Source: Hyalangium minutum (GTDB lineage: Bacteria; Myxococcota; Myxococcia; Myxococcales; Myxococcaceae). From it: a stretch of 64,000 nt of DNA. Shown here one piece after another: positions 4,130 through 37,118 of the stretch (the stretch's first letter is position 1; each line of letters starts with the position of its first letter). The position numbers and the translations under genes were made by a program. The notes under the pieces were generated by a model that was not told the DNA's origin, did not search any database, and saw only the letters and a program-made list of their open reading frames with translations. The stretch is taken from the NCBI RefSeq assembly GCF_000737315.1, contig NZ_JMCB01000012.1, positions 1 to 64,000 of the forward strand, given 5' to 3'.

Positions 4130-4139
4130 GGCAGTGGCT

Positions 4140-5927
4140 TCAGGGGTTCTGGGGTACATCCACGCGGCCGGGGCACGTCGACACGAAGTCCTCCGAGTTC
4201 ACGCGGATGACGCCGTCCACGGGGGACTTCACGCCCCCGATGGGGTAGCGCGCGGCGTTGTAGCGGTAGAAGCGGGTGATGGTGCGGGCGGTGGGATCGT
4301 CCGCGGGAATCATGGCCACGGAGAGCCAGAGATCGTTGTAGCCCGCGCCGCGCAGCACGACGGGGCCTCCGTCCGTGGGGCGGCCCACGGGCAGGCCCGC
4401 GTCCACGCCCGCGTCGCTCACCTCCAGCAGCGTGGGGGCCAGCAGCACGTTGTCCACGCGGAACGCGTAGCACTGGCGGCCGAACTCGTCCGGCGGCCCC
4501 ACGGCCACCATGGAGTAGCGGTAGCCGTCCACGGACAGGTGCGAGGTGTCCACCTCCACCGGGTGCGTGTGCAGGCGCAGCTCCGCGCGGCTGGTGAGCC
4601 CGTCATTGTCCGGGTCCTCGTCCAGGTCATTGCTGGAGCCCTGCGTGCCGCCACGCCACTCCACGCCGTCCGGCATGCCGTCGCGATCGCTGTCGACGAT
4701 CTTCGCGTTGGTGCCGATGAACTGCTCGTCGCAGTCCAGCACCCCGTCGCAGTCGTCGTCCACGCCGCGCAGGTTCGGCGGGCAGCCGGGGTCCAGGCCG
4801 CCACCGTCCGGAAACGCCACCTGGGTGGGGTTGAAGTCCACACCCTGGCGGCGGAACCGCACCTCCACGCCGTCGCTGAAGCCATCCCCATCCGTGTCCA
4901 CCATGTTGGGGTTGGTGCCCTCCTGGCGCTCCTCCTCGTCCGTCAGGCCGTCCCCATCCGTGTCCGCCACGCCCACGGGACTGCCCGGGGGCGCGCTGAA
5001 GTTGGAGGCGATCAGCTCCTTCACGATGAAGGCCCGGCGCACCTGGCCGAAGCTGAAGTCCAGGAAGTTGATGGGCTCGTTGTTGCGGAAGTCCCGGAAG
5101 TTGCCGCCGCCCAGCTGGGACATCTTCTCCAGCCGGTCCGCGTCCTGGTTGATGATGAGCAGCGGGCACCCGGCGTCCCCCGTCAAATCACAGATGGAGC
5201 TGACCGGCTGCGAGGGGTTGAAGACGTGCACGGTGTTCACGCGCACGTCCTCCACCAAATCCCTCAGCTGGCGGATGCGCACCACCGCGTCGCCGCGCAG
5301 CAGCTCGTCGTCCTGGTTGTTGGTGGGATGGCCGTCCGACAGGAAGATGACCGAGTAGCGCGCCTGGGCCAGGGCAGTCGCGCCGCCTGGTGCCGCCCGG
5401 CTCTTGGCGATGTCCGCGTTGATGAGCGAGTAGATGTCCGACAGCGGCTTGACGAAGTCCGTCGAGTCCCGGTTCGGCGCATTGTCGGGGTTGCGAAAGT
5501 TGAGCAGCGTGCGGATGAGGTTCTGCTTCTGGATGTCCGTGAGGCTGGCCACCTGCGCGAAGCCGTCCTGCCCGTTGGCGTCCTTGGTGAGGAACGCCGA
5601 GGTGCTGCCCGCGAAGAGCATCACCGAAATGGAGACCTCGGGGTCCGTGGGCAGGATGGAGAGGAGCTCGATGAGCGCGGTGGCGCGCGTACCGTCCGGA
5701 TCCGTCACGTTCATGGACTGGCTGGCGTCCAGGGCAACGACGATCTTGATCGGGCGCACCACCTCGTTGGTGCCCACCGTACAGAAGGTCCCCTCGAAGG
5801 CGACCGCGCGATCCACTGGCACCTGCTCGTCGCGCCGCTCGTCATAGAGGTAGGCATCCGAACACGCGGCGATGGCCGCCAGCGTCCCCACCACCGCCGC
5901 GATGAAGAAGACAGCCCTTCTCGTCAC
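4140..5927 (-). CDS. mtsE: VWA-domain lipoprotein with DTDGDG Ca-binding (TSP3-like) repeats, MtsE-like
   Basis: Lipobox AIAA-C; MIDAS motif DASQS; IFLSDG; many DTDGDG/DSDRDG repeats; 4-nt overlap with the upstream gene. Confidence 0.75.
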   Translation of the reverse strand: MTRRAVFFIAAVVGTLAAIAACSDAYLYDERRDEQVPVDRAVAFEGTFCTVGTNEVVRPIKIVVALDASQSMNVTDPDGTRATALIELLSILPTDPEVSISVMLFAGSTSAFLTKDANGQDGFAQVASLTDIQKQNLIRTLLNFRNPDNAPNRDSTDFVKPLSDIYSLINADIAKSRAAPGGATALAQARYSVIFLSDGHPTNNQDDELLRGDAVVRIRQLRDLVEDVRVNTVHVFNPSQPVSSICDLTGDAGCPLLIINQDADRLEKMSQLGGGNFRDFRNNEPINFLDFSFGQVRRAFIVKELIASNFSAPPGSPVGVADTDGDGLTDEEERQEGTNPNMVDTDGDGFSDGVEVRFRRQGVDFNPTQVAFPDGGGLDPGCPPNLRGVDDDCDGVLDCDEQFIGTNAKIVDSDRDGMPDGVEWRGGTQGSSNDLDEDPDNDGLTSRAELRLHTHPVEVDTSHLSVDGYRYSMVAVGPPDEFGRQCYAFRVDNVLLAPTLLEVSDAGVDAGLPVGRPTDGGPVVLRGAGYNDLWLSVAMIPADDPTARTITRFYRYNAARYPIGGVKSPVDGVIRVNSEDFVSTCPGRVDVPQNP

Positions 5928-7888
5928 GGCGCCGCCCCTGGCGCATCACCCACGCAGCGCGTCATGTACTCGCTCATTTCGTTGAGGGTGTCGGGTCTGC
6001 GGAAGTCGCCGTTCTCCAGGGCCAAATCCGGCCCCAGCGGGACGCGCACGCTGGGCGGCGCGTACTGCGCCCAGGCACACGCCGTCTTCCACACGCCGTA
6101 GTCCGTGGCCACCCCGCTCTCGGGAGCCTCCGCGAACCACACCTTGAAGAGGTTGTAACCCTGCTGCACGCCCGAGCGGTTGGGCGGCGTCACCATCTGC
6201 ATGTTGGAGATGGTGAAGTCGTAGCAGGTACTGCCGTTGGTCCGCTTCTCGGCGATCGACACCGAGTACTGGTAGCCGTAGCGCTCGTAGAAGGCCTCGT
6301 CCCGCTGCGTGGGGTCGCTGCCCGCGCGCAGCTCAGCCTCGTCCGGCAGGGAGTCCCCATCCGTGTCGATGCCCGACACGTTCGGCGTGAGCGGATCCAG
6401 CCCGTAGCGCACCTCCATCGCATCCGGCACGCCGTCACCGTCGCTGTCGATGAGGCCCGCGCGCGTCCGCACGTACGCCTCGGCGTACTGGGACAGACCG
6501 TCGCCATCCGTGTCGCGGCACACGCAGCCCGGCGTCAGCGGCGAGGCCGGATCGCACCCACGCGCGTCGAGATCATTCCCAGGCTTAAAGCCCTGGTCCG
6601 CCCGGCGCGCCTCGAAGCCGTCATCCAGGCAGTCTCCATCGCTGTCCGGAATGAAGGAGTTGGTCTGCAGCGTGAAGGTGTTGTCCAGGGTGTCCGGCAG
6701 CCCGTCGCCGTCCGTGTCCACCTCGCGCCCGCTCTGCCCGGGGACGGAGCTGAGCGACTCCACCATCAGCGTCTTGATGACGTTGCGCGAGGCGAACGAG
6801 GAGTAGTCCAGAGCGCCCAGGCCCATCTGGTTGATCTGCCCGGTGTCGTTGAACTCCTGGTACACGCCGTTGCCGATCTCCGCGAAGCGCTGCAGCAGCC
6901 ACGAGGCGATCTTCTTGGCCGCCTGCGGATACTCGCCCGGTGGGACGCCCGGGTAGGTGCCGTAGAGATCCTGGCAGATGGGGCCGCACAGCCGCACCGC
7001 CTCCTGGTTGAAGAGGAGCACCGTGTGCATGCGGATGTCGCCCACGTTGTACTGGTCCTTCAGCTCCATCAGCCGGCGCACGTAGCTGAAGAGCTGGTAG
7101 TTCTGGTTGCGATCCGTGCCGACCTCGAAGCCCTCGATGTTGTCCGGCGACTCTGGATCCAGCAGGTTGCAGAACTCCACCGCGCTCGAGGAGTCCGCCC
7201 ACGTCAGGTCCGGTGTGTCCGGCGTGGCATAGACGGAGAGGTTGTCGTTGGCCGAGCAGCGCGGGTACGGCGTTCCGTCCGTGAGGAACACCACCACGTA
7301 GCGGGTGCGCGGCAGTACCTCGGGGTTGGTCTGCGACAGCGTGGTGATGTCACTGGCGATGAGGCTGTAGGCGTAGCTGATGGCGCCCTGGTAGTCGGTG
7401 CCCTTGCCCAGCTGGCTCTGGAGACCGCTGATGTACGTGTCCAGCGTGCTGTCGGGCCGGGCGAAGCGGTTGCCGGTGGCGGCCGGAGGCCACACGTTCT
7501 TCACGTTGGTCTCGAACGGCACCACGGACAGCTGCACGTTGGGCTGATCGGCGAACTGATTGACCAGGCGGCGCATGGCGCGCACGCGCGCGGGCTCGGT
7601 GACGCCGGGGGGCACCACCACCGCCACCTGCTCGCAGAAGCCTGTGCCCTCCTGCGAGCCCGGCGGATCCGACACGCACATGCTGCCCGACTCGTCGATG
7701 ACGAGCACCACCTTCACCGGGAAGCCGGCGGGGTTGGCGGGCGCGGTGCAGACGCGCCCCTTGAGGGTGAGCCGGTCATCCAGGAGCGTCTGCTCCTGCA
7801 CGAGCGGCTCTACCAGCGTGTCGGTACATGCGACCACTGATGCGGCCAGGAGGCCCGCAGCCATCAGCATCCGGGGGTTCAGGTGCAT
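5924..7888 (-). CDS. mtsD: VWA-domain lipoprotein with DxDGDG repeats, MtsD-like
   Basis: Lipobox SVVA-C; MIDAS motif DESGS; VVFLTDG; DTDGDG/DSDGDG repeats; paralogous to neighbours. Confidence 0.78.
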   Translation of the reverse strand: MHLNPRMLMAAGLLAASVVACTDTLVEPLVQEQTLLDDRLTLKGRVCTAPANPAGFPVKVVLVIDESGSMCVSDPPGSQEGTGFCEQVAVVVPPGVTEPARVRAMRRLVNQFADQPNVQLSVVPFETNVKNVWPPAATGNRFARPDSTLDTYISGLQSQLGKGTDYQGAISYAYSLIASDITTLSQTNPEVLPRTRYVVVFLTDGTPYPRCSANDNLSVYATPDTPDLTWADSSSAVEFCNLLDPESPDNIEGFEVGTDRNQNYQLFSYVRRLMELKDQYNVGDIRMHTVLLFNQEAVRLCGPICQDLYGTYPGVPPGEYPQAAKKIASWLLQRFAEIGNGVYQEFNDTGQINQMGLGALDYSSFASRNVIKTLMVESLSSVPGQSGREVDTDGDGLPDTLDNTFTLQTNSFIPDSDGDCLDDGFEARRADQGFKPGNDLDARGCDPASPLTPGCVCRDTDGDGLSQYAEAYVRTRAGLIDSDGDGVPDAMEVRYGLDPLTPNVSGIDTDGDSLPDEAELRAGSDPTQRDEAFYERYGYQYSVSIAEKRTNGSTCYDFTISNMQMVTPPNRSGVQQGYNLFKVWFAEAPESGVATDYGVWKTACAWAQYAPPSVRVPLGPDLALENGDFRRPDTLNEMSEYMTRCVGDAPGAAP

Positions 7889-7924
7889 GGGAACGGGCCT
7901 CCTGTGCTGCGGATGGGGAACAGT

Positions 7925-9256
7925 CTACTCCGCGCGGCGGCGGCGCAGCAGCAGTCCGAGCAGCGCGGCGCCCAGCGCCATGCCACCCACCGGGCCCGGG
8001 AGCGCCGCGCAGCTGCTGGCGGTGCCGTTGCCCACGCTGAGCTTCAGGCTGGAGACGCTCTCACGCTGATCCGGGTACGCACGGTCCGAGAAGGCCAGCC
8101 GCGCCTGGACCTGGATGTCGTACTGGCCGTCCGCGTCCGCGGTGAAGGACGGCTCGGTCTTCGCCAGGTACTCGTACTGCCAGTGGCGGCTATAGGTCAC
8201 CGCGCCCGTCGGGTTCTCCACCACGGCCTTGGAGCCGGAGGGACGCGACTTCACCGTCCACGTGTACTCGATGGCCGCGCCGTTGCGGTTGGCGAACAGC
8301 GGCAGCTCCACCTTCTCGCCGGACTTCAGGCTCAGCTGGCCACCACCGGACACGGTGAAGGGCCCCTTCGGATCCAGGCAGTCATCCGGGGTGTTCTTGT
8401 CCACCACGACGCAGTACTTGGTGTCGCAGGCATCGCCCACGCCGTCACCGTCATCGTCCACCTGGTCGCGGTTGACCACGTACGGGCAGTTGTCCAGCAC
8501 CTTGCCATCAGCGTCCTTGTTCAGCACGCCGTCGTTGTCGATGTCCGCGTCACACACGTCACCCAGGCCGTCCAGGTCCTTGTCCGCCTGATTCGGGTTG
8601 GCGATGGAGGGGCAGTTGTCGCCGTTGTCGGAGACGTTGTCGCCGTCCTTGTCGATGCGGCACTGGCTGGCGTCCGCGGGCATGGCCTGATCCGCGTTGG
8701 GCAGGCGCGGGCAGTTGTCCTCGCCGTCCGCATGGCCGTCATTGTCGTCATCCAGATCGCACACGTCGCCCTGGGCGTCGCCGTCCAGGTTGCTCTGATC
8801 CTTGTTGGGGATGAGCGCGCAGTTGTCCTGGGCGTTGGGGATGGTGTCGTTGTCCGCGTCGGCGTCGCAGTCATCGCCGATGCCGTCGCCGTCCGCGTCG
8901 CGCTGCTGGAAGTTGGCCAGCGCCGAGCAGTTGTCGCAGACATCGCCCACGCCGTCGCCGTCGCCGTCGCCCTGCTCGCGGTTGGAGGCGAACGGGCAGT
9001 TGTCCTTGTCATCCGCCTTGCCGTCGCCGTCCGCGTCGTCGGTGTAGGCCAGCGTCACGCCGTCATCCGTGTACGACACCCACACGGAGCAACCGCAGCC
9101 GCAGCCACAGCCGCCGCCCTCCTCCTTGGGACGGCCGCAGCTGCTGCCGAGGCACTCCGGGTTATCGACCGCGTTGGTCTGCGCCTGGGCCGGCAAGGCG
9201 CTGAGAAGGAAGAGAGCCCCAAGGGCCAGAGAGGGAATGAAGCGGTTGCGTGTCAT
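7925..9256 (-). CDS. mtsC: thrombospondin type 3 repeat MYXO-CTERM surface protein, MtsC-like
   Basis: ATG at 9256 with AAGGAG RBS; Sec signal; many DxDGDGxGDxCD-NCP repeats; C-terminal SSCAALPG...LLGLLLRRRR sorting signal. Confidence 0.85.
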   Translation of the reverse strand: MTRNRFIPSLALGALFLLSALPAQAQTNAVDNPECLGSSCGRPKEEGGGCGCGCGCSVWVSYTDDGVTLAYTDDADGDGKADDKDNCPFASNREQGDGDGDGVGDVCDNCSALANFQQRDADGDGIGDDCDADADNDTIPNAQDNCALIPNKDQSNLDGDAQGDVCDLDDDNDGHADGEDNCPRLPNADQAMPADASQCRIDKDGDNVSDNGDNCPSIANPNQADKDLDGLGDVCDADIDNDGVLNKDADGKVLDNCPYVVNRDQVDDDGDGVGDACDTKYCVVVDKNTPDDCLDPKGPFTVSGGGQLSLKSGEKVELPLFANRNGAAIEYTWTVKSRPSGSKAVVENPTGAVTYSRHWQYEYLAKTEPSFTADADGQYDIQVQARLAFSDRAYPDQRESVSSLKLSVGNGTASSCAALPGPVGGMALGAALLGLLLRRRRAE

Positions 9257-9427
9257 GACAACTCCTTTCGACGCCGCACTCCTAGCAAGACCCGATCCGC
9301 TCACCACTGGACACTGTTCGTCTGAAAATTCAGGGATTTGCACAAAGCGCCCGAGGTGTGGAGCGGGGGGTGTGGGGGGGAGCCCCCAGTGGGAGCGTGG
9401 GGTCTACCCCCCACCGCGAGGAGTGGA

Positions 9428-11032
9428 TCAGGTCCCGAGGATGAAGTCGTTCGGGGTGAAGAGGAGGGTCTGGTTGGGCTCCTTGCCCTTCTCCTCGGAG
9501 TAGCGGAGGGACTCGATGAAGAGCGAGCCCACGCCGGCGCCCCGCGGATCATTGGCCCGGCCCACCTGCATATAGAGGTAGATGTCGTTGGTGCCCCGCG
9601 GAATGCTCACACCCGGGAAGAGCGGGTGGGGCCGCTCCAGGGTGGGCAACACGGTGATGTTCTCCGCGCGCACCTTGTAGCAGGCGCGCCCATCCGGAGT
9701 GGGCTCGATGGGCTCGAACGAGTAGCCGTAGCCGCGCTCGGCCTGGAAGGCCAGATCCGCGCTGAGCGGATCTCCTCGGATGATGGCCTCCTGGATGTTG
9801 GGGACGCCGTCGCGATCGGTGTCCAGCAGGTCCTCGGGGACGAGCGGGTTGGTGCGGCCGAAAGCCTCCACGAGATCTGGCAGCCCGTCCGCGTCCGAGT
9901 CGCCCATGCACGGGTCGGTGCCCAGCACGCGCTCCTCGCAGGTGTTGAGCCGGTCGCCATCCTCGTCCAGGGAGACATTGCACCCGTTGATGATGTCCAG
10001 GTTGCCCGGCTGAGGCTTGAGGCCCATGCGCAGCTCGATGCCGTCCATGAGCCCATCGCCGTCCGTGTCCGGCTGACGCGGATCCAGGCCCAGGGCGACC
10101 TCGTCGTCATCGGACACGCCGTCGGCGTCGCTGTCGGCGGAGATGATGCCGTCGCGCACCTGGACGTTGCGGTTGAAGGCGACGAAGCGCTTGAGCACGA
10201 GCGACGTCTGCAGCGAGGCGTAGTTGAGGGTGCCCAGCACGTCGCGCAGGCCCTGCGGGTCGGTCTCGATGGCCTCGGTGCCTCCGGCGTTGGCGATGGC
10301 AGCCACCTGATCGCGGGTGACGGGGTCGGCCACGTCGCGCACGTAGACGGGCTGCACCACCACCTCGCCGGCGCCGAACGACTGGACGAGGTTCTTCACC
10401 TCGCCGGTGACGGCCGTCAGCTCGCACACGCTGCAGGCCGCCGCGCCGGAGACGGGGGTGAGCGCGGAGCAGCGCGCGTCAATGCCCACGTTGAAGGCGG
10501 GGTTGTCGCAGCTGAGGTCCGCCTGGGTGATGACGAGCACGATGACGTAGCGGCTGCGGCCTACGGCGCCCCGGCAGGCCGTCTGCATGTCGCCGGAGAG
10601 GATGCTCTTGGAGAGGCGGAGCGCGGAGCGGATGCTCATGGGCCCCGACTCCTGGTAGCTGGCGTACCGGGGCAGCGCGGCCTGGAAGGTGGCGGCGTCC
10701 GCGAAGCTGCCCTGGAGGCCGGTGGCCACGGTGTGGAAGGCCACCAGGGAGAACTTGATGAAGGGGCCGGAGAAGCGGCTGCTGAGGGTGCCGAGCGCGT
10801 CGGTGGTGTAGCCCACCACCTCGCTCGGCACGCCCTGCCCTCCCGAGAGCGCGAAGACGACCTTCACGGGGAAGGCGTCACCGGTGGCCAGAGGGATGCA
10901 GACCTCGCCGGAGAAGTCCGCCCGGTCCTTGCCGCTGGGGCCCCGCCCATCCAATGCGTAGAGGCCCGCGTCAGAGCACGACACGAGCAGGAGCGAGACG
11001 AGGAGCCAGATCAGGTGAGAGGGGGAGCGCAT
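9428..11032 (-). CDS. mtsB: VWA-like lipoprotein with DxDGDG repeats, MtsB-like
   Basis: Lipobox LLVS-C; FPVKVVF lead-in as in mtsD; DADGVSD/DTDGDG repeats; MIDAS degenerate. Confidence 0.7.
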   Translation of the reverse strand: MRSPSHLIWLLVSLLLVSCSDAGLYALDGRGPSGKDRADFSGEVCIPLATGDAFPVKVVFALSGGQGVPSEVVGYTTDALGTLSSRFSGPFIKFSLVAFHTVATGLQGSFADAATFQAALPRYASYQESGPMSIRSALRLSKSILSGDMQTACRGAVGRSRYVIVLVITQADLSCDNPAFNVGIDARCSALTPVSGAAACSVCELTAVTGEVKNLVQSFGAGEVVVQPVYVRDVADPVTRDQVAAIANAGGTEAIETDPQGLRDVLGTLNYASLQTSLVLKRFVAFNRNVQVRDGIISADSDADGVSDDDEVALGLDPRQPDTDGDGLMDGIELRMGLKPQPGNLDIINGCNVSLDEDGDRLNTCEERVLGTDPCMGDSDADGLPDLVEAFGRTNPLVPEDLLDTDRDGVPNIQEAIIRGDPLSADLAFQAERGYGYSFEPIEPTPDGRACYKVRAENITVLPTLERPHPLFPGVSIPRGTNDIYLYMQVGRANDPRGAGVGSLFIESLRYSEEKGKEPNQTLLFTPNDFILGT

Positions 11033-11179
11033 CAACCCCCCATTGTAGAGCCCAGGCCCCGGGAGAGTTTCAAGCGCCTGCGCGGAGATCCGAGCGGATC
11101 CACGCTGGGGGTTCCGCTTCAGAGGAATCTTCCACCATACTCACGTCCGGGCTCTGTCCCCACCGAAAGGCACTTTCCG

Positions 11180-12790
11180 ATGCGCCCTGCCGTGCTCCGC
11201 TCTCCTCTCGCTCGCTTCGCAGGGACCTGGCTCCTGCTGGGCAGCCTCTCCGCCTCTGCCCAGCCGAAGGCCACCGAGGCGAAGGCCACCGAGGCGAAGG
11301 CCACCGAGCCCGGCACGCAGGTTCCCTCCTGGGCCTATCTCTTCGTGGCGACCGGGCCGATGGAGCGCGTGGAGGCAGCCTTCGCGGAGATGCGCATGCC
11401 GCTGCCCCAGGTGCTGAGCCGCGAGCACCTTGAGGAGGCTTTCCCCTTCATCGGCCCGGGAGGCATTCGCCCGGGAGGCTCGGTGGGCATGTTGATGGGC
11501 GCAGGGGATCCGGGCTCGACCGAGCCCTCTGGCATCCTTCTCTTCCCCGTCACGAAGGACGCCGCGCCGCTGAAGGGCTTCTCGGAGCTAGGAGGCCGGG
11601 TGCTCCCTGATGCGAGCGACACCGTCAAGATCAAGGGCACGTACTTCCGCCGCACGAAGGGCTTCCTGCTCACGGGCCCCAAGGGCGAGTACATCACCGA
11701 CGCGGATCCGCTGGGCTTGGAGGAGAACCTCACGGGCCCCGGCACGCTCGCTTCGGTGGACGTCGACCTGGAGCGCTGGCGGAAGACGGATCCCACCACT
11801 TTCTATCCGCTTCTCTCGGACAAGGAGCCCACCCCGGGCGACGAGGCCCGGCATGTCTACGCGCTCGGGCGGAGCCTGGGGACGCGCGTCTACGAGCGGC
11901 TGCTGAACCGCGTGCGCCTCTCGGTGCTGGACAACGGCACCTCGCTGCGCCTGCGCATGGGACTGGAGCCGCTCGCGCCGGGGGAGATCGCTCCGCTGCC
12001 CCGGCCCTCGTTCCCGGCCAGCATCATCGGCCGGCTCGACATCGCCTACTCCACTCCGGAGTCCTCGCAGTGGTTGCAGAGCATCACCGAGGAGTTCATG
12101 AACGCGGCGGAGAAGGATGGCCTGTTCGCCGAGGCGGAGAAGGCCAAGCTCAACGTGGAGCAAACGCGCTCGTTGATCAAGGAGGTGCTCGAGACCTTCT
12201 GTATCGCCGACGCCATCTCCCTTGCGGTGGAGCCGGTAAAGGGGGGCAAGCTCGTCTACCACCAGGTGAACCAGTACCGGGCGGCGGCGAACTTCACGGC
12301 CCGGCTGAGTGGCCTCCTCGAGAAGATCCACGAGCTCGACCGGCAGGGTGGCGGCCGCGGGTCGAGCATCGGGCTGACGACCTATAGTGCCGGTGGCGCA
12401 CGCATCAGCCGATTGACCTTCCCGGGCAAGAAGAGCCTCACGGTCGACTTCGTGGACTCGGGCACCACAGTGCGCCTCGTGGCCTCGGGAGATACCCAGC
12501 GCCGCGTGCCCGGGCTCCTCAAGCTCCCAGCCAGCGGGACGCTCACCTCGGGCTTCTCGGGCTCGTTCGATCCAAGCGCGGCCGTGGATGCGTACGTGGC
12601 CTCTGGGGGGAGCATGCCTTTGCCGCTGCGCACGCGCGTGGGGGTGCGAGGGCAGCAGGTCACCTGGACGACCCGCGCCGAGGGCGCCGCCGCGGTGGTG
12701 GACCTGGACATCCCCAAGCCGCTTGCTCAGGCCATCGTGCAGTTGGTGGGGAGCCGCGCCGTGGACCTGGAGGCCTCGGACCAGCCGTAG
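11180..12790 (+). CDS. hypothetical secreted protein (536 aa)
   Basis: Real start ATG 11180 (AAAGG upstream) inside the inflated 9338..12790 ORF; signal peptide MRPAVLRS...SASA-Q; no recognised domain. Confidence 0.75.
   Translation: MRPAVLRSPLARFAGTWLLLGSLSASAQPKATEAKATEAKATEPGTQVPSWAYLFVATGPMERVEAAFAEMRMPLPQVLSREHLEEAFPFIGPGGIRPGGSVGMLMGAGDPGSTEPSGILLFPVTKDAAPLKGFSELGGRVLPDASDTVKIKGTYFRRTKGFLLTGPKGEYITDADPLGLEENLTGPGTLASVDVDLERWRKTDPTTFYPLLSDKEPTPGDEARHVYALGRSLGTRVYERLLNRVRLSVLDNGTSLRLRMGLEPLAPGEIAPLPRPSFPASIIGRLDIAYSTPESSQWLQSITEEFMNAAEKDGLFAEAEKAKLNVEQTRSLIKEVLETFCIADAISLAVEPVKGGKLVYHQVNQYRAAANFTARLSGLLEKIHELDRQGGGRGSSIGLTTYSAGGARISRLTFPGKKSLTVDFVDSGTTVRLVASGDTQRRVPGLLKLPASGTLTSGFSGSFDPSAAVDAYVASGGSMPLPLRTRVGVRGQQVTWTTRAEGAAAVVDLDIPKPLAQAIVQLVGSRAVDLEASDQP
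11266..11308 (+). repeat. 15-bp tandem repeat x3 (KATEA)
   Basis: GAAGGCCACCGAGGC repeated at 11266, 11281 and 11296 (third copy partial). Confidence 0.9.
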
Positions 12791-12809
12791 TAGCGGACCG
12801 GCAGCACCG

Positions 12810-12846
12810 GATCCGGGAGAGGCCCGCCTGCGGCCACTCCCGGATC
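12810..12846. terminator. hairpin between convergent genes (likely bidirectional terminator)
   Basis: GATCCGGGAG (12810-12819) / CTCCCGGATC (12837-12846) perfect inverted repeat between stops at 12790 and 12860. Confidence 0.65.
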
Positions 12847-12859
12847 GCGGCGGACCGAA

Positions 12860-13075
12860 CTAGCCGATGTTCCGGATGACCGACATCCGGGTCTCGTGCA
12901 TCTGCTTCATGAGGTTGGTGATGAGCGTGACCAACTCACTCTCCTTCTGCATCTGCATCTGAGCCTTGAGTTTATCCTGCTGGTCCGGTGGCACGCCCTC
13001 CAGCTTCGCCTGATCATCTGCGGTCCACGCCTTTGCGTTCCTGGCAGCAGAAGAAATCACCGAATTGATGTCCAT
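12860..13075 (-). CDS. 71-aa helical-hairpin protein resembling T3SS needle/pilin subunits (SctF/EscF/YscF-like C-terminus)
   Basis: ATG 13075 with GGAGA RBS; MDINSVISSAARNAKAWTADDQAKLEGVPPDQQDKLKAQMQMQKESELVTLITNLMKQMHETRMSVIRNIG; helix-PP-helix with terminal N..K..HE...S(V/I)I.N motif. Confidence 0.6.
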   Translation of the reverse strand: MDINSVISSAARNAKAWTADDQAKLEGVPPDQQDKLKAQMQMQKESELVTLITNLMKQMHETRMSVIRNIG

Positions 13076-13099
13076 GCGTCTCTCCGTGGTGGGAAGTAC

Positions 13100-13148
13100 A
13101 AAGCCCCCGGAGTCTCTGGCCCAACGGGTCAGCACTCGCGGGGGCTTT
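13100..13148 (-). promoter_or_regulatory. long stem-loop 25 nt upstream of the needle-like gene
   Basis: AAAGCCCCCG (13100-13109) / CGGGGGCTTT (13139-13148), inner GAGT/ACTC and TGGCCC/GGGTCA pairings. Confidence 0.7.
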
Positions 13149-13180
13149 CAACTGATACGGAAGAACCGCAGTGAAATCGT

Positions 13181-13196
13181 TACCACTTGCGGCGTA
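13181..13196 (-). promoter_or_regulatory. copy 1 of 16-bp upstream motif (TACGCCGCAAGTGGTA)
   Basis: 105 nt upstream of ATG 13075; matches five other copies in the insertion. Confidence 0.5.
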
Positions 13197-13259
13197 TGAG
13201 TGGAGCCACGTCAACGCCAGACATGAAAGCCAGACATGGCCTCCATCGGCGCGCGTGTC

Positions 13260-13685
13260 TCACTCGCCCGCGCGCTTCTCGGGGGCTGCAGGCTGCGCGG
13301 AGGCAGCCCGGGTCTTCTCCAGCATGTAGCTCAGGCCCATGCTCTGCACGCGGTCATGCAGATAGTTCATGCACTCGGTGAGCAGCGGAGGCGGCGGGTT
13401 GAGGGCGTTCGGCTCCTGGGTGTAGCGCTGAAGCGCCCGATTAAAGTCCTCGGAGAGGCTCGCCTTGAAGGGCATCTCCGGCTGCATGGCCAGGAACACC
13501 TCGCGTACCGAGCTCAGCAGCTGCTGCAGCGGCCCCGTGGCGGAGGCGGCCTGAGATGTCAGCTCGGCGATCAGCCGCTGGCGCCGCTCGATCAGCTCGG
13601 GCGGCTCGGGCTTGAGGGCCATCAGCAGCGTCTTGACCTCTTGGGGCAGGTTGGCGGGAATGTCTTCGGGCTTGAACATGTACAT
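13260..13685 (-). CDS. hypothetical protein, paralogue of 15006..15470
   Basis: Near-ungapped alignment by eye: P.EVK..L..LKPEP, GPL, PF, F..AL.RY, PPP..L..C, VQ..GL. Confidence 0.85.
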   Translation of the reverse strand: MYMFKPEDIPANLPQEVKTLLMALKPEPPELIERRQRLIAELTSQAASATGPLQQLLSSVREVFLAMQPEMPFKASLSEDFNRALQRYTQEPNALNPPPPLLTECMNYLHDRVQSMGLSYMLEKTRAASAQPAAPEKRAGE

Positions 13686-13697
13686 GGTGGTATCTCC

Positions 13698-14984
13698 TCA
13701 GGCGAGTCCAAAGCCAAACATCTGCATCTGCCGCATCACCTCGAGCATCTGGAAGAACTGCCACGTCTGCTGCATGGCGGGCAGGGAGGCGGGCGTGGCC
13801 GGAGCGGGCGGAGGGCTGGCCGGAGCCTGCTGCGTCTGGCCCGGCGGACGGTAGCCATACGACGAGCTCATGTCGCCCGGCTTGTAGTTCGTGTTGAGCT
13901 GGCTGATGCCGTGCTTCTCCAGTTCCACCAGCTCGCCCTGCTGGGTGATGCCGTCGCCGTTGCGATCCTCCCAGATCTTCAGGCCCTTGAGCTCCTCGCC
14001 CTGCACCTTGCCGTCGCCATCCTTGTCGAAGTAGTGGGACAGCTTCTCGTAGCCGTTCTTGAACGTCTCCTTCCCGTTCAGATCGACGTGGCCGAACAGC
14101 TCCTTGCCGCTGGTGATCTTCCCATCCCCGTCCGTGTCCCAAACGAGCATGCCGTCGCCGCCCGTCTTCGGGTCCCAGGCCTTGGTCCACTCGTTCTCGT
14201 TCTTGTTGCCCCAGAAATACAGGAACTTGTTTTTGTTCGTGCCGTCCTGCTTGAGCTCGCTCACCAGCCGGCCATTGGCATCCCGGAACTCGGCACGCAT
14301 GCCATTGCTGAGCCCCAGTCCCATGTCCCCTCCATCCGCGTTCCAGCCCTTGCTGTTCTTCTTCTGCAGGGCCTGCAACTGTTCGGCGGTGAGTGTCTTC
14401 ACCAGCTTGCCGTTCTTGTCGAACACCTGGGCCTTCACTCCGGCGGGCAGTTCAGGCGCGCCGCCCCCTTTGGCCGGGCGTCGCATGAGGCTCTTGGTCT
14501 CCCACTGGCGATTCTGGGGATCCAGGTCGAAGCCCTTGACCGTCTTGCCCTCCAGCTTGCCGTTGCCCTTGATGTTGCTGCCGGTGATATCAGGCCGCCC
14601 GTTGCCGTTGAGGTCCAGGACGATGGGGGATTTCTGAGTCGTCTTCGTGCCGGACTTTGCATCGAAGAACACGTCCCACATCTTCCCCTTCTCCAAAGGC
14701 GAAGGCTGCGGGCAAGCCGGAGGCTGCGGCACGCAGTTCTGCCCCCACCCCGTCCCGCACATGCTCCCGAAGTTCTGGAGCAGGGAGATGGAGGAGAAGA
14801 GGCTGCCCAGCGTGTTGAGCGGGGCGCTCTGCGGATGGCAGCCGCAGGCATGGTTCAGGCTGTTGAGCGTCGAGGAGGAGAAGAACATGCCGCTGAAGGA
14901 GAAGCTGGCAAAGCCCATCCCTCGCATCGCCGACGAGCCTGAAGCGGTGGGAAACATCGGAAAGGAATTGGGTGCGATATTCAT
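13698..14984 (-). CDS. EF-hand-like Ca-binding protein without signal peptide; S/M/F/Q-rich termini
   Basis: SPIVLDLNGNG ... DGMLVWDTDGDGKITSGKELFG ... NGYEKL...DKDGDG...LKIWEDRNGDGITQQGEL, the Ca-binding block often seen in RTX-type exoproteins. Confidence 0.8.
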   Translation of the reverse strand: MNIAPNSFPMFPTASGSSAMRGMGFASFSFSGMFFSSSTLNSLNHACGCHPQSAPLNTLGSLFSSISLLQNFGSMCGTGWGQNCVPQPPACPQPSPLEKGKMWDVFFDAKSGTKTTQKSPIVLDLNGNGRPDITGSNIKGNGKLEGKTVKGFDLDPQNRQWETKSLMRRPAKGGGAPELPAGVKAQVFDKNGKLVKTLTAEQLQALQKKNSKGWNADGGDMGLGLSNGMRAEFRDANGRLVSELKQDGTNKNKFLYFWGNKNENEWTKAWDPKTGGDGMLVWDTDGDGKITSGKELFGHVDLNGKETFKNGYEKLSHYFDKDGDGKVQGEELKGLKIWEDRNGDGITQQGELVELEKHGISQLNTNYKPGDMSSSYGYRPPGQTQQAPASPPPAPATPASLPAMQQTWQFFQMLEVMRQMQMFGFGLA

Positions 14985-15005: not shown

Positions 15006-15470
15006 TCATCCCCGGGTGTTGCTGAGCCGGATACGAGTCTGCAGGTCCTGCTGTTGACGGGTTTCCTTCGGGGGGGCGGCGGGCTCGGAGGAGACCTCAT
15101 CCACGGCCTCCAGCAGCCCACCCAGGCCTCGGGCCTGCACGAGCTCGCGCAGGAAGATGAGGCAGTCGAGCAGCACCTCGGGCGGCGGCTGGGAAGCGGA
15201 GGGATCCTTCCGGTAGCGCTCGAGCGCTGCGGTGAACTCCCGGGCGAAGTGGGGCTGGAAAGGCGCCCCCGGCCTCGTGGATTGCAGCACCCTCCGCATG
15301 CACTCCAGCACCTCCCGGAGTGGCCCCGCCGAGGTCTGCACGTGCGCATCGAGCCCGGAGAGCAGCTGCTCGCGCACCTCGGCGGCGGCCTCGGGCTCTG
15401 GCTTGAGGTGGGCCAGAACGCGCTTCACCTCGTCTGGCACGCCTGCAAGGTCATCCTTGAGATCAGACAT
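15006..15470 (-). CDS. hypothetical protein, paralogue of 13260..13685
   Basis: Same shared motifs; tightly spaced in the operon (15 nt after the TPR gene). Confidence 0.85.
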   Translation of the reverse strand: MSDLKDDLAGVPDEVKRVLAHLKPEPEAAAEVREQLLSGLDAHVQTSAGPLREVLECMRRVLQSTRPGAPFQPHFAREFTAALERYRKDPSASQPPPEVLLDCLIFLRELVQARGLGGLLEAVDEVSSEPAAPPKETRQQQDLQTRIRLSNTRG

Positions 15471-15485
15471 GGCTGCACATGGCTC

Positions 15486-16031
15486 CTACTTGGCGGGGGA
15501 CTGCTGGGGCTCTTGGAGCTTCTGGACGATGGTGCTCAGCGCGATCGCCATGCCTCTGGCGCGTTGGCTGAAGCCCTGCTCGCCTTTCGGATCCAGCTCG
15601 GCGATGCGCTGGAGATCCCTCGCGGCCTCTTCGATCTTGCCCTCCTGCAGCAGCACCTCGGCGCGGTTGCACAGGGCTGCGAGGTCCCGCTCGTTGAGGG
15701 CCAGGGCGCGATCGTACTCTTCGCACGCGCGCCCCAGCTCCCCGCGGCGCTGATAGACAGAGCCCAGACCGGTGTGAAAACTGGCCTCATTAGGCGCGAG
15801 CGTGGTGAGGCCCTCGAAGATCTGCTGGGCGGCCTCAAGCTTGCCGGACTCGTAGAGGTGGCGGCCCTGCGAGGCGAGGCCGTAGAGTTCCTCATGGGTG
15901 AGCTCGTAGAGATCGGCAAGCATGAGATCTCCCTGAAGGAAGGCACGCATGCGCGCATTCAGTTCCGCGGAGGGCTCTGGAGGAGGTGGAGAGGCTGCGG
16001 GCTGACTGGGCGCGGGGGCCTTCTGGCTCAT
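15486..16031 (-). CDS. SycD/LcrH-like TPR chaperone (T3SS class II type)
   Basis: LTHEELYGLASQGRHLYESGKLEAAQQIFEGLTTLAPNEASFHTGLGSVYQ...A..EY..A; three TPRs, 181 aa, no signal peptide. Confidence 0.75.
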   Translation of the reverse strand: MSQKAPAPSQPAASPPPPEPSAELNARMRAFLQGDLMLADLYELTHEELYGLASQGRHLYESGKLEAAQQIFEGLTTLAPNEASFHTGLGSVYQRRGELGRACEEYDRALALNERDLAALCNRAEVLLQEGKIEEAARDLQRIAELDPKGEQGFSQRARGMAIALSTIVQKLQEPQQSPAK

Positions 16032-16060: not shown

Positions 16061-17407
16061 TCAGCCGCCGATCGGCCGGCTCCAGCGCATCTGCATCGCG
16101 TTGAGCTGCAGATCACGCAGGCTCATGTAGCGCTGGATCATCTGGTTGACCGACGCGAGCATGCGCTGGAGGGTGGACTGGAAGCCGCCGTTCAGACCCA
16201 CGCCGCACATGGCCGCGCCGCCCATGGGGCCGCAGAACGGGCTGCGAATGCCACCCATGTTGCTCAGCTGCGTCATCATGGGCAGGTAGGGCCGAGGCTG
16301 GCAGGCGGAGAACATGTTCTGGCATTGCTGCCAGTGATTGGACGTGGCTGCGTACTGGGACTGGAAGAGCGAGGCGGTGATGCCCACCATCTGGGTGGCA
16401 TACACGTTCCACGGCACCTGGATGGGGCGGCGGCCGAGCTGGCTGTTCTGGATGGCATTGCCGAGCTGATACGCCAGCGTCTTGTCATCCTTGCCCTTGC
16501 CGGCGCCGCTGAGCACCTCGCGGCCCCCTTGGCTCCAGGCGATTCCATCACCCGCGAGCTGGAACGACTGGCCATCCGCGTTAGTGGCATCGTGGGCGTA
16601 GCCGTTCTTCTGCACGTCCGAGAAGGTGGTGGTGAACTTCTGACGCGCCTCCTGCTGCTCCGTGACCCGGGCGGTCACCTGGCGTTGCTCGACCGTGCCC
16701 AGGTTCCTCCAAGGCGTCGCCGACAGTTGCTGCGAGCTGCTGCTCACCGTCTGCCACTCGGCGCTGGTGAGCTGGCTGTCGACGGACACGTGCTTGTTGC
16801 CGTTGTAGATGTCCACCTGGTTGATGTGGAGGTCCTTGCTGTCCCCCTTCTCTTGGATGGTGATCTTCGTACCGTCTGGCAGGTTGAAGGTGCCGGTGCC
16901 CTGGTAGCGCCACACGTCGCCATCCGACTCGCGCACTGCGGGATCCCTCGGGAGTTGGCGGCTCTCGGTGGTGACATTGTCGGAGGTGACAGTGCGGGTG
17001 GGCGGCTCGGCCTTGAGGTCCGTCCACTTGCCGTCCGGGTTTTGGATGCGAACCTTGCCGTCCGCGACGCTGACCTTGTAGCCACCGGGCGTGGTGACCG
17101 TACCCGCCTGCTTGTCCAGGTCGAGCTGCCCGGAGTTCTCGAAGTCCGGCATCGCGGCGTAGCCCACGACATTCGTCATCGAGAGCTGGGCTCCCATGGC
17201 GCCGTAGGCTTGGAAGCACCGGTTCAGCGAGTCCATCCCCCCGAAGCCCGCCTGCTGACTCCCCAGCAGGGACTGCACTTGGGATGACCACGAGAACATG
17301 GTCGAGAACTGCTCAAACGACTGCTGCAGCGACTGGGCTCCGCCTTGGGTGGGGAAAGACAGGCGAGAGGGAGGGACAAAGCCACCGTTCTGTAGGGGGA
17401 AGGTCAT
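16061..17407 (-). CDS. DUF1521/MIIA-domain protein, divergent copy (RDPA in place of GDPH)
   Basis: ATG 17407 with AAGGA RBS; VTTPGGYKV...PDGK...RDPAVRESDGDVW...TF.LPDGTKITI aligns with 20811..21956. Confidence 0.75.
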   Translation of the reverse strand: MTFPLQNGGFVPPSRLSFPTQGGAQSLQQSFEQFSTMFSWSSQVQSLLGSQQAGFGGMDSLNRCFQAYGAMGAQLSMTNVVGYAAMPDFENSGQLDLDKQAGTVTTPGGYKVSVADGKVRIQNPDGKWTDLKAEPPTRTVTSDNVTTESRQLPRDPAVRESDGDVWRYQGTGTFNLPDGTKITIQEKGDSKDLHINQVDIYNGNKHVSVDSQLTSAEWQTVSSSSQQLSATPWRNLGTVEQRQVTARVTEQQEARQKFTTTFSDVQKNGYAHDATNADGQSFQLAGDGIAWSQGGREVLSGAGKGKDDKTLAYQLGNAIQNSQLGRRPIQVPWNVYATQMVGITASLFQSQYAATSNHWQQCQNMFSACQPRPYLPMMTQLSNMGGIRSPFCGPMGGAAMCGVGLNGGFQSTLQRMLASVNQMIQRYMSLRDLQLNAMQMRWSRPIGG

Positions 17408-17580: not shown

Positions 17581-20580
17581 CTATGGCGCGTCTGCCTCGT
17601 AGCGCGTGATGAACTCCACCCGACGGTTGGTGGCGCGTCCCTGCTCGGTCGCATTCGACTGCAGCGGCCGGTCCTCACCGAAGCTCCGGACGGACATGCG
17701 CGAGCGCGCCACGCCTTGACTCTCGAGATAGTCGCGCACCGCGCCTGCACGCCGCAGGGCGAGTTCACGGTTGTACGTGGCTGTGCCGATATCGTCCGTA
17801 TGGCCCTCGATAGAGACGGAGACGATCTCAGGGTGCTCGATGAGCACCTGAGCCACCTGATTCAGCAGCGGGAAGGACACGCTCTTGATGGTGGCCTTGT
17901 CATAGTCGAAATGGATCGTGTCCTTGATGGCAATCCTGCGCCGCTGGATCACCACCAACTGCCGATCCTTGGCGGGGCATCCCTGGTTCTCAGAGGGGCC
18001 AGGAATCTCACGGCAGTTGTCCAGGTGATCCCACACGGTGTCTCCATCCGTATCCTTGAGGGGGCACCCTGCCATCTCGACGATGCCGGCCTTATTGGGG
18101 CACTGATCCTTCTCATCCACCACCCCGTCCCCATCCGAATCGAGCACTGGGCACCCACGGCGAGAAGCAGGACCTGGCTCATCCGGGCACGCGTCGACCC
18201 GGTTGAGCACCCCATCCCTGTCACGATCTGGATCATCCATCTCTTGGGAGGCCTGCTCTTCCAGAGAGGGCTCCCGAGGACGGGCCACCTTCCCAAAAGA
18301 CATCCCGAGCAGAAGACGGAACCGCGGCGTCCCCGGCGCATTGCCCAGCCCCAGGCCCGTGAGTCCCTGCACCTCAAGCAGCTCTCCCACAGGGAGCCTG
18401 ACACCGCCGAGCAGTTCCAAGGAATAGCCCTCACGCTGCAGAGGCACTGAGCCGATGGCGGCCACCTCCCCCCCCAGCCCTTCCGCCGTGGTGGACAGTC
18501 CAGCGCCCAAGCGAAGCGCATGGCCCAACTCGTCTTGGATGTTGTCGTCGTTATTCAAGATGATGCGGGGCCGCAGCATGAAGCCCGCGTCGAGCGAGGC
18601 CCGCACCGCACCGAAGCGACGGCCCAGCATGAGGTTGGGAATGGCATGCAGTTCTCGGGCGAGCGCGGACGCGCTGCCCAGCCCTGGGCTCGCACTCAGC
18701 CCGGCTGAGAGATCCACGGAGTCCTTCCGATGCTCGGCCAGCAGGCTGAGCCGGGCTGTGAGCAGTGGAGTCCCTGGCGCCACACCTCCTTGGGGCGTTC
18801 CTACGCCTCGATCCGTCAGGTCATCACCCTGCTGAGAGAGCACCAGAGGCACCTGTGCCCCCAGTTCTACCCGGCCTCCCAGTCCCACAGCCCCGGAGAG
18901 AACCGCCGTGGCCCGATGGCGGACAACCACGCCCAGAAGCACTCCTTCCTCGTAGAGGATCAGCGGCTTGTTCTCATAATGCCCAGCGAGCGCCAGCCGG
19001 TAGCCACCCGCGGGGAGCAACTCGCCCGTGCCCAGCACCCATGAGCCCATGCCGCTCGGGTTCAACCTGAGGCGTTCCAGTTCGAACGCAGGGATGTCCG
19101 TGGACTGAGCGGAAGTGGGAACGCTTATCGCCAGAGCCCCCAGAATGACGATTCCTCCCCATCCTCTCAGCTTCACACGACCGAACCGCCGAGTTCCCTG
19201 TGGCATGCGCCGACGCCACAGCAGCATCAATGCCACCCACACAACGGGAGCTGCCGCCCCCCGTGTGGCGGCACTGCAGCCACCTCCCACCATGGCACGA
19301 TCTGGCAGTGCTCCACTGGGAGAGCGCACTGTGACGAGGACGGAGCAACTGGCTTGGTTGCCCGCAGCGTCCTTGGCCGTATACGTCACGGTCTTCGTCC
19401 CCACGGTCAAGCGGGGAGCCGAAGATTCAAACCCCGTGATTGCTGAGCAGGTATCCGTGGCCCAGTTCTGCGCAGGGGTTACGGTCGCCAAGCCATCGCT
19501 CTCTGCCTTAACCTCGATGGACTTAGGACAGTTGAGGGTTGGTGCCACGGTGTCCCGAACCTCAACGGTACGGGCGACGGGTGGAGCACTCTGTCCTTTG
19601 GAATCCTGCACGTCATAAGTGATCGTGTAGGGCTTTGGCACGGCAGTGTTCACGCGGCCGGTCGTCACGATCTTGTCCGTCAGATTGCCATCGCACGGAT
19701 CGTTGGCGGTGGCCCCTGGATCCACATACGCCGAGCCACACTCCACCATGGGTACGTTCGGAGCATTGGGGTCGTCCGGATCATTCAGGGTGATGGACGG
19801 AATCGTATGGTCCGTTACGGTCACATACGTGGCGCAGTAGTCGAAGAACTCACCTTGAGCGTTCATGCAGGTAAGGGTCACGTCCGTAATCTCGTCAATT
19901 TTCAGCAGACCCGTTGTCGAAGGACTTTGGGTGCATACAAGCGTCCCGCCCCCAGGCATCGTGGAACCGTTGTCGATACTCACGGTAGCGCCACAGCGTG
20001 TGGTGGCCTGCACTTCACAAGCCTGCTTGCAGTGGACTCCTGGCCCCTGCCCAGGGAGCGGGTACTGAGTTGAGCACAGAGGGAGTTCATCGTTCACTCC
20101 CAGCGGGCGGGAGGGAGTCGACGGTTCCAGCGCACGAGCGCAATTGAGTGCGAGGTAGCGCCCCGTCCGGCTGGGAGACTCACTCGCGCGCAAGATTTTC
20201 TCTGCCAAGGAGGGCTCTCGGCTGTTCGGATACCTCTCCTCGCCAGCAACGACAACGTTACCGTCGACAGCGGCTTCCCAGACGCCACGGGTGCGCTTCA
20301 CTGCCTGGAGACTGTCCGTACCAAGCTGGCACGCGTCGTCACCGATAATGAGGGCTCGGTAGCCACGAAACTGATCCGCGCTCATGGCGCTCCACTGGGC
20401 TGGCGTGACAGCGTGCACGTCCAGGCCGAGCTCTGACGCCATCTGCGCCTCTTGGCTGGGAGCATCACCACTCGCGCTTCCCTTGAGGAGCAAGACGGGG
20501 CGGCTGGCACGTGCAGGCGGCTCACAGGCGAGTGCTCCCCCCACCAGTAGAAGCACCACCGCCAGACTCTCGAGTCTCAT
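17581..20580 (-). CDS. surface protein: DUF5011/HYR Ig-like domains + internal MYXO-CTERM + OM beta-barrel + TSP3 repeats + OmpA C-terminal domain
   Basis: VECGSAYVDPGATANDPCDGNLT (DUF5011-like); GGGCS...LMLLWRRR mid-protein; barrel segment; DRDRDG/DSDGDG/DTDGD repeats; IEGHTDDIG...N.ELAL.RA..V...NRRVEF (OmpA). Confidence 0.88.
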   Translation of the reverse strand: MRLESLAVVLLLVGGALACEPPARASRPVLLLKGSASGDAPSQEAQMASELGLDVHAVTPAQWSAMSADQFRGYRALIIGDDACQLGTDSLQAVKRTRGVWEAAVDGNVVVAGEERYPNSREPSLAEKILRASESPSRTGRYLALNCARALEPSTPSRPLGVNDELPLCSTQYPLPGQGPGVHCKQACEVQATTRCGATVSIDNGSTMPGGGTLVCTQSPSTTGLLKIDEITDVTLTCMNAQGEFFDYCATYVTVTDHTIPSITLNDPDDPNAPNVPMVECGSAYVDPGATANDPCDGNLTDKIVTTGRVNTAVPKPYTITYDVQDSKGQSAPPVARTVEVRDTVAPTLNCPKSIEVKAESDGLATVTPAQNWATDTCSAITGFESSAPRLTVGTKTVTYTAKDAAGNQASCSVLVTVRSPSGALPDRAMVGGGCSAATRGAAAPVVWVALMLLWRRRMPQGTRRFGRVKLRGWGGIVILGALAISVPTSAQSTDIPAFELERLRLNPSGMGSWVLGTGELLPAGGYRLALAGHYENKPLILYEEGVLLGVVVRHRATAVLSGAVGLGGRVELGAQVPLVLSQQGDDLTDRGVGTPQGGVAPGTPLLTARLSLLAEHRKDSVDLSAGLSASPGLGSASALARELHAIPNLMLGRRFGAVRASLDAGFMLRPRIILNNDDNIQDELGHALRLGAGLSTTAEGLGGEVAAIGSVPLQREGYSLELLGGVRLPVGELLEVQGLTGLGLGNAPGTPRFRLLLGMSFGKVARPREPSLEEQASQEMDDPDRDRDGVLNRVDACPDEPGPASRRGCPVLDSDGDGVVDEKDQCPNKAGIVEMAGCPLKDTDGDTVWDHLDNCREIPGPSENQGCPAKDRQLVVIQRRRIAIKDTIHFDYDKATIKSVSFPLLNQVAQVLIEHPEIVSVSIEGHTDDIGTATYNRELALRRAGAVRDYLESQGVARSRMSVRSFGEDRPLQSNATEQGRATNRRVEFITRYEADAP

Positions 20581-27872: not shown

Positions 27873-30884
<3,012 letters not shown>

Positions 30885-30960
30885 TGCGTGGGGCGAACCA
30901 GGCCTTCTGAATACAGACTCGGATGCTCAAACTTTTACATCGCGAGCCGAACGAAAGCTG

Positions 30961-37090: not shown

Positions 37091-37118
37091 GGCTCGGCCC
37101 ACGAAAGGGAGTCTCCAC

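Follow-up and report, generated by a model that had tools for sequence, protein, structure and literature searches.

Does the type III secretion system of the myxobacteria, T3SS*, really work without a needle? From Abby and Rocha (2012) onwards it has been seen as a basal intermediate between flagellum and injectisome, needle-less and secretin-less (PMC3459982). Those authors described Myxo T3SSs without SctF, held that the needle subunit "should have been found" if it were there, and inferred its loss; for the ancestral system they considered a periplasmic SctF structure (PMC3459982). Reviews up to 2025 state that T3SS* has no needle homolog, and in current models the tips of the Kil pilus (a Tad pilus) stand in for the missing needle (PMC10433427, PMC10849154, PMC12075869, PMC12428579). 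No secretin has been reported for the system either (PMC3459982, PMC10433427), and its effectors are called unknown in the literature. Myxococcus xanthus needs the system to lyse its prey.

The question comes up again with a small gene in the first 64,000 nucleotides of a contig from Hyalangium minutum, the stretch called the window from here on. An original prediction, made from the letters alone, took the gene's 71-residue product for a stand-alone needle or filament subunit, or an inner-rod-like protein, and supposed that the host's T3SS might look needle-less only because its needle gene had been displaced.

The first matter is whether there is a gene at all. The open reading frame lies on the minus strand at 12860-13075, running from ATG 13075 to a TAG stop at 12860-12862, and its translation, MDINSVISSAARNAKAWTADDQAKLEGVPPDQQDKLKAQMQMQKESELVTLITNLMKQMHETRMSVIRNIG, agrees exactly with the protein described in the original prediction, with two helices joined at GVPPD. 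Its composition is coding-like (GC3 0.81 and GC2 0.33, in a window of 67 % GC), and a Shine-Dalgarno sequence, GGAGAG (13080-13085, minus strand), stands 4 nt from the ATG, or 6 nt counted from the GGAG core. It has eight close homologs of 70-72 aa with 55-73 % identity, one of them (58 %) from a Hyalangium sp. MAG. An exhaustive profile search, run over 1.84 billion cluster representatives, returns 175 relatives at E <= 1e-3, mostly of 70-77 aa, and the gene order around the 71-aa gene is kept in three other assemblies. Composition, ribosome-binding site, homologs near and far, and conserved surroundings together make this a real gene, beyond a chance open reading frame. Scans of 12700-13400 for a sigma-70 consensus promoter and for intrinsic terminators found none.

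Then there is the shape of the product. AlphaFold2, working from the alignment of close homologs, gives a model with a pLDDT of 84, in which helices occupy residues 3-15, 19-26, and 30-70 and the chain breaks at G27-V-P29, within the turn G27-VPPD31: a helix-turn-long-helix hairpin. As a single chain, then, the protein has the form of SctF, an alpha-helical hairpin of 70-90 aa with a proline-containing turn. The N-terminal arm (1-26) is variable in the clade and the C-terminal helix (30-70) nearly invariant; among the eight close homologs it is the last 30 residues that hardly change, while the N-terminal 25 vary. Most of the 175 relatives keep the same P-containing turn and have endings such as ...MSVIRNIG, ...MAIINNMR, and ...SVIQNM. 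A variable N-terminal arm joined to an invariant C-terminal helix is, so far as sequence can tell, the conservation pattern of a needle subunit.

Shape and pattern are not ancestry, and the databases give a faint answer when asked about the 71-aa protein by itself. T3SS_needle_F (PF09392) is the sole Pfam family matched at E <= 10, by residues 3-70 against 4-71 of the 71 positions of the model, with a score of 16.4 bits (E 0.01) that lies under the curated cut-off of 29.4; NCBIfam gives no match at E <= 1. Across the family the same answer recurs. Among Pfam families T3SS_needle_F alone recurs, in 4 of 9 homologs and in 8 of 42 family members (best E 2.1e-5), and the only NCBIfam models that recur among the 42 are SctF TIGR02105 (five members, best E 7.4e-4) and PRK15326 (two members). 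Three family profiles matched the PDB chain 7y6c_F, at E 1.9e-3, 2.6e-5, and 7.9e-5. For the family profile that gave the second of these values it was the sole significant chain, with MxiH aligned end to end at E 0.55. The chain, though filed under the name of a co-chaperone, comes from a structure of the EscE-EsaG-EsaH complex (PMC9426511) and represents EsaG, the needle protein of Edwardsiella, in its C-terminal half; the PDB relatives of the chain itself are BsaL, YscF, MxiH, and PscF. A Foldseek search of the PDB with the AlphaFold2 model found nothing below E 4, a result that says little, since a two-helix hairpin makes a poor query.

The comparison of alignment with alignment is clearer. 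The 42-sequence family was set by hhalign against 17 proteins named as needle subunits by their source (MxiH, BsaL, PrgI-type, Ysc-type, and EsaG-type), with a resulting probability of 91.7 % (E 7.9e-7, 58 columns). Columns 15-72 of the family lie on columns 25-85 of 85 of SctF, the two C-termini are flush, and the P-containing turn of the family falls on the PSNP/PSDP turn of SctF. The SctF alignment reversed gives 1.0 %, and 30 shuffles of its columns give at most 1.5 %. Taken subgroup by subgroup the match to SctF is moderate, 66.6 % for the clade of the window protein and 53.6 % and 49.2 % for two groups found in T3SS* clusters.

Could this be convergence, the chance resemblance of an unrelated small coiled coil with Q/M/K-rich amphipathic helices and no role in type III secretion? 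The matches of the 71-aa protein to curated models all fall below threshold, and short helical proteins do match spuriously, as ubiquitin does through GVPPDQQ: the polyubiquitin chains that a single-sequence search pulls from the PDB at E 4e-13 owe their scores to a short motif that repeats, G(I/V)PPDQQ, and were discarded. But the distance between 91.7 % and controls of 1.5 % or less, an alignment that runs end to end to flush C-termini, and the position of the family in at least six genera, between sctU and sctV as described below, leave convergence very improbable. Homology of the family to SctF, as judged by the profiles, is well supported but distant, and the distance explains why every member of the family is annotated as a hypothetical protein.

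The original prediction allowed for an inner-rod-like protein as well. SctI (PrgJ, MxiI, YscI) is a small exported helical protein whose C-terminal helix packs as it does in the needle, and the architecture of that helix is common to SctI and SctF. If the 71-aa protein were an adaptor of this type, it would sit on the SctRST gate in the periplasm, a few copies making up a single helical turn, and a structure so short would suit a machine that has no secretin. The SctI that Abby and Rocha reported in Myxo loci (PMC3459982) was not located in the parts of the clusters covered here, from sctL onwards. The profiles speak against it. Models of SctI (PF17001 and TIGR02497, from Pfam and NCBIfam) match none of the members in sets of 9, 42, and 18 that were scanned, and PDB searches with family profiles give needle proteins only, never the chains of PrgJ, MxiI, or YscI at E <= 10. 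Length and number point the same way, as 71-77 aa fits the needles EscF, SsaG, and EsaG and is shorter than the roughly 100 aa of SctI, and multi-copy arrays, with up to seven gene copies, argue for a high stoichiometry. I consider an inner-rod adaptor decidedly unlikely. The check by HMM and profile that accompanied the original prediction thus comes out for its needle half, on the strength of PF09392, EsaG, and hhalign with its controls, and against the inner-rod half.

Among known needles the family most resembles the SPI-2/LEE-type proteins EsaG (PDB 7Y6C chain F), SsaG, and EscF, which at 71-73 aa are of like length class and have the same sequence of helix, proline turn, and long C-terminal helix. 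EsaG, the best database match, ends in ...MSIISKIG, members of the family in ...MSVIRNIG or ...MSVIGKI. The resemblance goes only so far. Identity to the three is about 15-25 %, below the cut-offs of Pfam and NCBIfam; the turn reads VPPD, APAE, or SGPD in the family where the three have an N/D-P motif; and in contrast to them the family is multi-copy, lacks recognizable SctE/SctG genes, belongs to a host system without secretin, and, in the window copy, lies outside the cluster. The SPI-1-type needles MxiH, PrgI, and BsaL align with it from the turn to the very end of the C-terminal helix (...VIRNIG in the family, ...IIQNFR in the needles), and they too have a variable N-terminus and a conserved C-terminus, whereas the N-terminal arm of the family is about 13 residues shorter and the aligned residues are about 14 % identical.

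What company does the 71-aa gene keep? The original prediction placed it outside any T3SS structural operon, and there it was right: Pfam scans find no basal-body or export-gate genes in the 64-kb window, and tblastn with SctN, P, Q, R, S, T, U, and V and the FHA/SctD-like protein of Melittangium finds no match. One protein of the window, of 815 aa (37035-39482, plus strand), has an N-terminal FHA domain that matches the model of the Yop-YscD cytoplasmic domain at E 2.8e-13; since the Melittangium FHA/SctD-like protein shows no similarity to it by tblastn, it is probably, from its sequence, a generic FHA protein and not SctD.

The prediction that the gene stands alone fared worse, because the gene closes an operon of T3SS accessory genes, a run of six on the minus strand that encode, in order of transcription, a DUF1521 protein, a TPR protein, a 154-aa protein, an EF-hand protein, a 141-aa protein, and the 71-aa protein. 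The first is a 448-aa DUF1521 (NopE1-type MIIA) protein (16061-17407, probable start ATG 17407; PF07481, E 1.9e-5), whose autocleavage motif is degenerate, RDPAV. The second, a TPR protein of 181 aa (15486-16031), is of the SycD/LcrH type, the class II chaperones of T3SS. TIGR02552 matches it at E 3.8e-21 over positions 2-132 of 136, with a score under the cut-off, and its matches in the PDB, SycD (E 1e-9), AcrH, and PcrH, take in most of each chain. The 154-aa protein (15006-15470) is identified by synteny and as a paralog of the 141-aa protein, at 37 % identity. The EF-hand (calcium-binding) protein, of 428 aa with Q/M/F-rich termini (13698-14984), is recognized by sub-threshold EF-hand matches in Pfam and a weak match to XopAW; the window and its sister contig L004 both have its gene, which the Hyalangium version of the operon lacks. 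Last before the small gene, and separated from it by 184 nt, comes the 141-aa gene (13260-13685), by synteny its conserved upstream partner.

The 141-aa protein connects this locus to the secretion system itself. By BLASTP it is homologous (E 1e-17) to the product of Melittangium L006:9258-9860, the gene of about 200 aa that stands immediately in front of the small genes in T3SS* clusters, and this makes the window locus a duplicated satellite of a module of the cluster. AlphaFold2 gives it a helical core at 29-115 with a pLDDT of 64, from an alignment of only two sequences, and Foldseek finds no match to that model at E < 0.4. From synteny the protein is a candidate chaperone or adaptor.

Beyond the operon lie a 999-aa protein of the OmpA family with Ig-like, HYR, and TSP3 repeats (17581-20580, minus strand; by Pfam and synteny) and, transcribed divergently from the 448-aa DUF1521 operon, a second module on the plus strand. 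It consists of a 381-aa DUF1521 protein (20811-21956; Pfam E 4.2e-14) with an intact NopE1-type autocleavage motif, WGDPHV (GD'PH), and the 173-aa TPR chaperone paired with it (21979-22500), the counterpart of the TPR gene that follows DUF1521 in T3SS* clusters. GD'PH is the site at which the T3SS-secreted NopE1 family cleaves itself (PMC6506597). The 999-aa protein has a signal-peptide-like N-terminus and a C-terminal OmpA domain, separates the two modules of DUF1521 and chaperone in the window as in L001 and L004, and is possibly an envelope partner of the module.

On the other side of the 71-aa gene, directly beyond the gene convergent with it, five large genes occupy 1841-11035 on the minus strand, a run that is syntenic in L004. 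The one at 1841-4198 has no Pfam match; the other four carry TSP3 or bacterial TSP3 repeats, one of them together with VWA, and one is MtsD-like (cell-cell cohesion).

Is the 71-aa gene a needle gene that has strayed from its cluster? In T3SS* loci of related genomes, mapped by tblastn and hmmsearch, the order in most genomes is sctN, sctO-like, sctP-like, sctQ, fliO-like, sctR, sctS, sctT, sctU, and after sctU a 158-aa gene, a TPR gene, the gene of about 200 aa, one to seven copies of the small gene, DUF1521, and TPR, then, further on, TPR, sctV, and an FHA/SctD-like gene. Six genera have relatives of the 71-aa protein encoded at that place, between sctU and sctV, and these relatives are of 72-77 aa. 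Melittangium boletus has three copies, Cystobacter fuscus two, Hyalangium versicolor four, Pyxidicoccus fallax two, several Myxococcus species one or two, and Archangium gephyra, A. lansingense, and A. minus five to seven. Within an array the copies differ little or not at all and recur every 480-490 nt or thereabouts. In A. minus, Pyxidicoccus, and Myxococcus the pair of DUF1521 and TPR genes stands among the small-gene copies, not after them, and on a 5.2-kb Corallococcus contig (L025), without sctU or sctV, two copies flank such a pair. Since the family resides within the T3SS* clusters of related genomes, the 71-aa gene is an extra paralog, not a displaced sole needle gene, although the broader point of the original prediction, that the gene bears on the supposedly needle-less system, holds. 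I propose that the 71-aa protein is a divergent member of the SctF superfamily, a satellite paralog of a T3SS*-cluster family specific to Cystobacterineae, and judge this probable, with room left for doubt.

The family is present in the model organism as well. In complete genomes of M. xanthus (L036, L037) two identical copies of a 74-aa gene flank the DUF1521 and TPR pair. The sequence is that of UniProt Q1D9J3_MYXXD, which I take from its UniProt code to be a DK1622 protein, and of GenBank ABF86581.1 and ABF91074.1, which on my reading are the two copies in the DK1622 genome; the records call it "uncharacterized" or "hypothetical". In the literature searched I found no description of the small family, nor any mention of the two accessions or of neighbouring MXAN tags, and the only full text found to link Myxococc* with SctF was that of Abby and Rocha.

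The small gene has companions at both kinds of site: DUF1521, TPR chaperone, and partner gene are found with it in T3SS* clusters and at the satellite locus alike. In Melittangium, Cystobacter, Archangium, Pyxidicoccus, and Myxococcus (M. xanthus included) the stretch from sctU to sctV contains DUF1521 with a SycD/LcrH-like TPR, and NopE1-like DUF1521 genes outside the window lie at L006:11444-12541 and L036:8571-9737. The TPR proteins beside the small gene resemble SycD/LcrH and SctY, not SctG, and no SctE/SctG-type co-chaperone gene is recognizable near it. With NopE1 and NopE2 and their class II chaperone the operon partners share DUF1521, the GD'PH motif, and the pairing with a SycD/LcrH-like TPR. 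The rhizobial NopE proteins, however, are effectors of a complete, secretin-bearing T3SS, whereas in this predatory bacterium the pair accompanies a needle-like gene. NopE-like DUF1521 proteins, paired with class II chaperones, are candidate substrates of T3SS*. The idea that the DUF1521 and EF-hand proteins might themselves carry a needle-like helix at their C-termini was considered and rejected, as an hmmsearch with the family profile, over all six-frame open reading frames of the window and 32 loci, matched only the small genes.

An operon of chaperones and putative substrates, with no structural genes, might be thought an odd place for a needle subunit. Perhaps the protein derives from SctF and no longer polymerizes, serving now as a secreted regulator or plug, a substrate-specific adaptor, or a co-chaperone of the DUF1521 and EF-hand proteins. 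Helical hairpins of this size do act as T3SS co-chaperones, SctE/YscE (66 aa) being one (PMC9426511), and the host system has no secretin (PMC3459982) through which a needle might pass. Yet the model of SctE/YscE (PF08988) matches neither the window protein nor its clade at E <= 10, SctE models are absent from the Pfam and NCBIfam matches of the 42 family members, and such weak matches as there are all lead to SctF. Moreover, as many as seven identical copies in a cluster are more what one expects of a bulk structural subunit than of a regulator, and the invariant extreme C-terminus is the feature needed for needle packing. A protein that has given up polymerizing seems to me rather unlikely. 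The near-identical arrays, as sequence goes, would fit a highly expressed structural subunit, and it is the SctF-type subunit that I follow from here.

How might such a subunit work? The 71-aa gene would have been duplicated together with its upstream partner of about 140 aa, and it stands at the end of a module of NopE-like DUF1521 proteins and SycD/LcrH chaperones. In the cytoplasm a partner (the 141-aa protein or a TPR chaperone) would keep its product soluble. The product would be exported through the T3SS* gate by way of its unstructured, Ser/Ala-rich N-terminus, an early substrate of the needle-subunit type, functionally coupled to the NopE-like proteins. The invariant C-terminal helix would then pack it into a helical polymer, needle- or rod-like, either as its chief component or as a minor or variant one among the subunits that the cluster encodes, and the variable N-terminal arm would face outwards. 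No secretin is present in any locus seen and none has been reported, which leaves no obvious way to build a classical extracellular needle; with no secretin of its own, the system would have a polymer that is periplasmic or that passes through another conduit in the outer membrane. Given the gap of 184 nt and a site outside the T3SS cluster, family membership and neighbours are what link the window copy to type III secretion.

The sister contig, L004, is 94.1 % identical to the window over 18.3 kb. The most divergent stretch, 12890-13570, with 61-80 % DNA identity, takes in half of each of two genes, the 3' half for the 141-aa protein and the 5' half for the 71-aa protein, together with the spacer between them; despite the divergence of the coding sequence, the 37 nt upstream of the 71-aa ATG are identical in the two. 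This suggests diversifying selection, or replacement of alleles, acting on an exposed or specificity-determining part.

I would go one step further, tentatively, with a suggestion that I think somewhat more apt to be wrong than right: that the T3SS* of predatory Cystobacterineae is not needle-less but exports an SctF-type subunit that has been overlooked (in M. xanthus, Q1D9J3, of which the window protein is a paralog) and polymerizes it into a conduit, periplasmic or trans-envelope, and that satellite loci such as this one are interchangeable, prey-directed modules, each with a variant subunit, its partner, SycD-like chaperones, and NopE-like substrates activated by calcium. With a conserved, often amplified SctF-like gene in the clusters, SctF would have been retained, not lost, and the evolutionary scenario would change with it. 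So would the mechanistic model of how substrates leave T3SS*, and NopE-like DUF1521 proteins with class II chaperones would become concrete candidates for those substrates. A finding about one small family contradicts a statement repeatedly made about a model system, and M. xanthus is genetically tractable.

The family has outliers. Lone copies of the small gene lie, for example, beside a gene for a Ser/Thr-kinase-nSTAND1 NTPase in Pyxidicoccus and in a Hyalangium MAG (L009:10001-10219 and L035:1025-1243); the kinase-nSTAND1 gene of the window (27873-30926, minus strand) has no family member adjoining it. A distant relative is a family of proteins of about 100 aa (alignment A6; P0064, P0093, and others), which end in ...SN(V/I)EKSKHETQMAAIRNIR, have a conserved PEP motif near the N-terminus, and reach only 51 % against SctF by hhalign; two copies stand in tandem on the one contig found for it, a metagenome contig of 954 nt (L033). 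Finally, in six proteins of 190-490 aa (P0026, P0031, P0042, P0051, P0068, and P0079) the last 50 residues or so fit the profile of the small family, as in ...LLTNLMKMEHEARMSVIRNLS, which raises the possibility that they are tip- or adaptor-like and end in a helix of the needle type.
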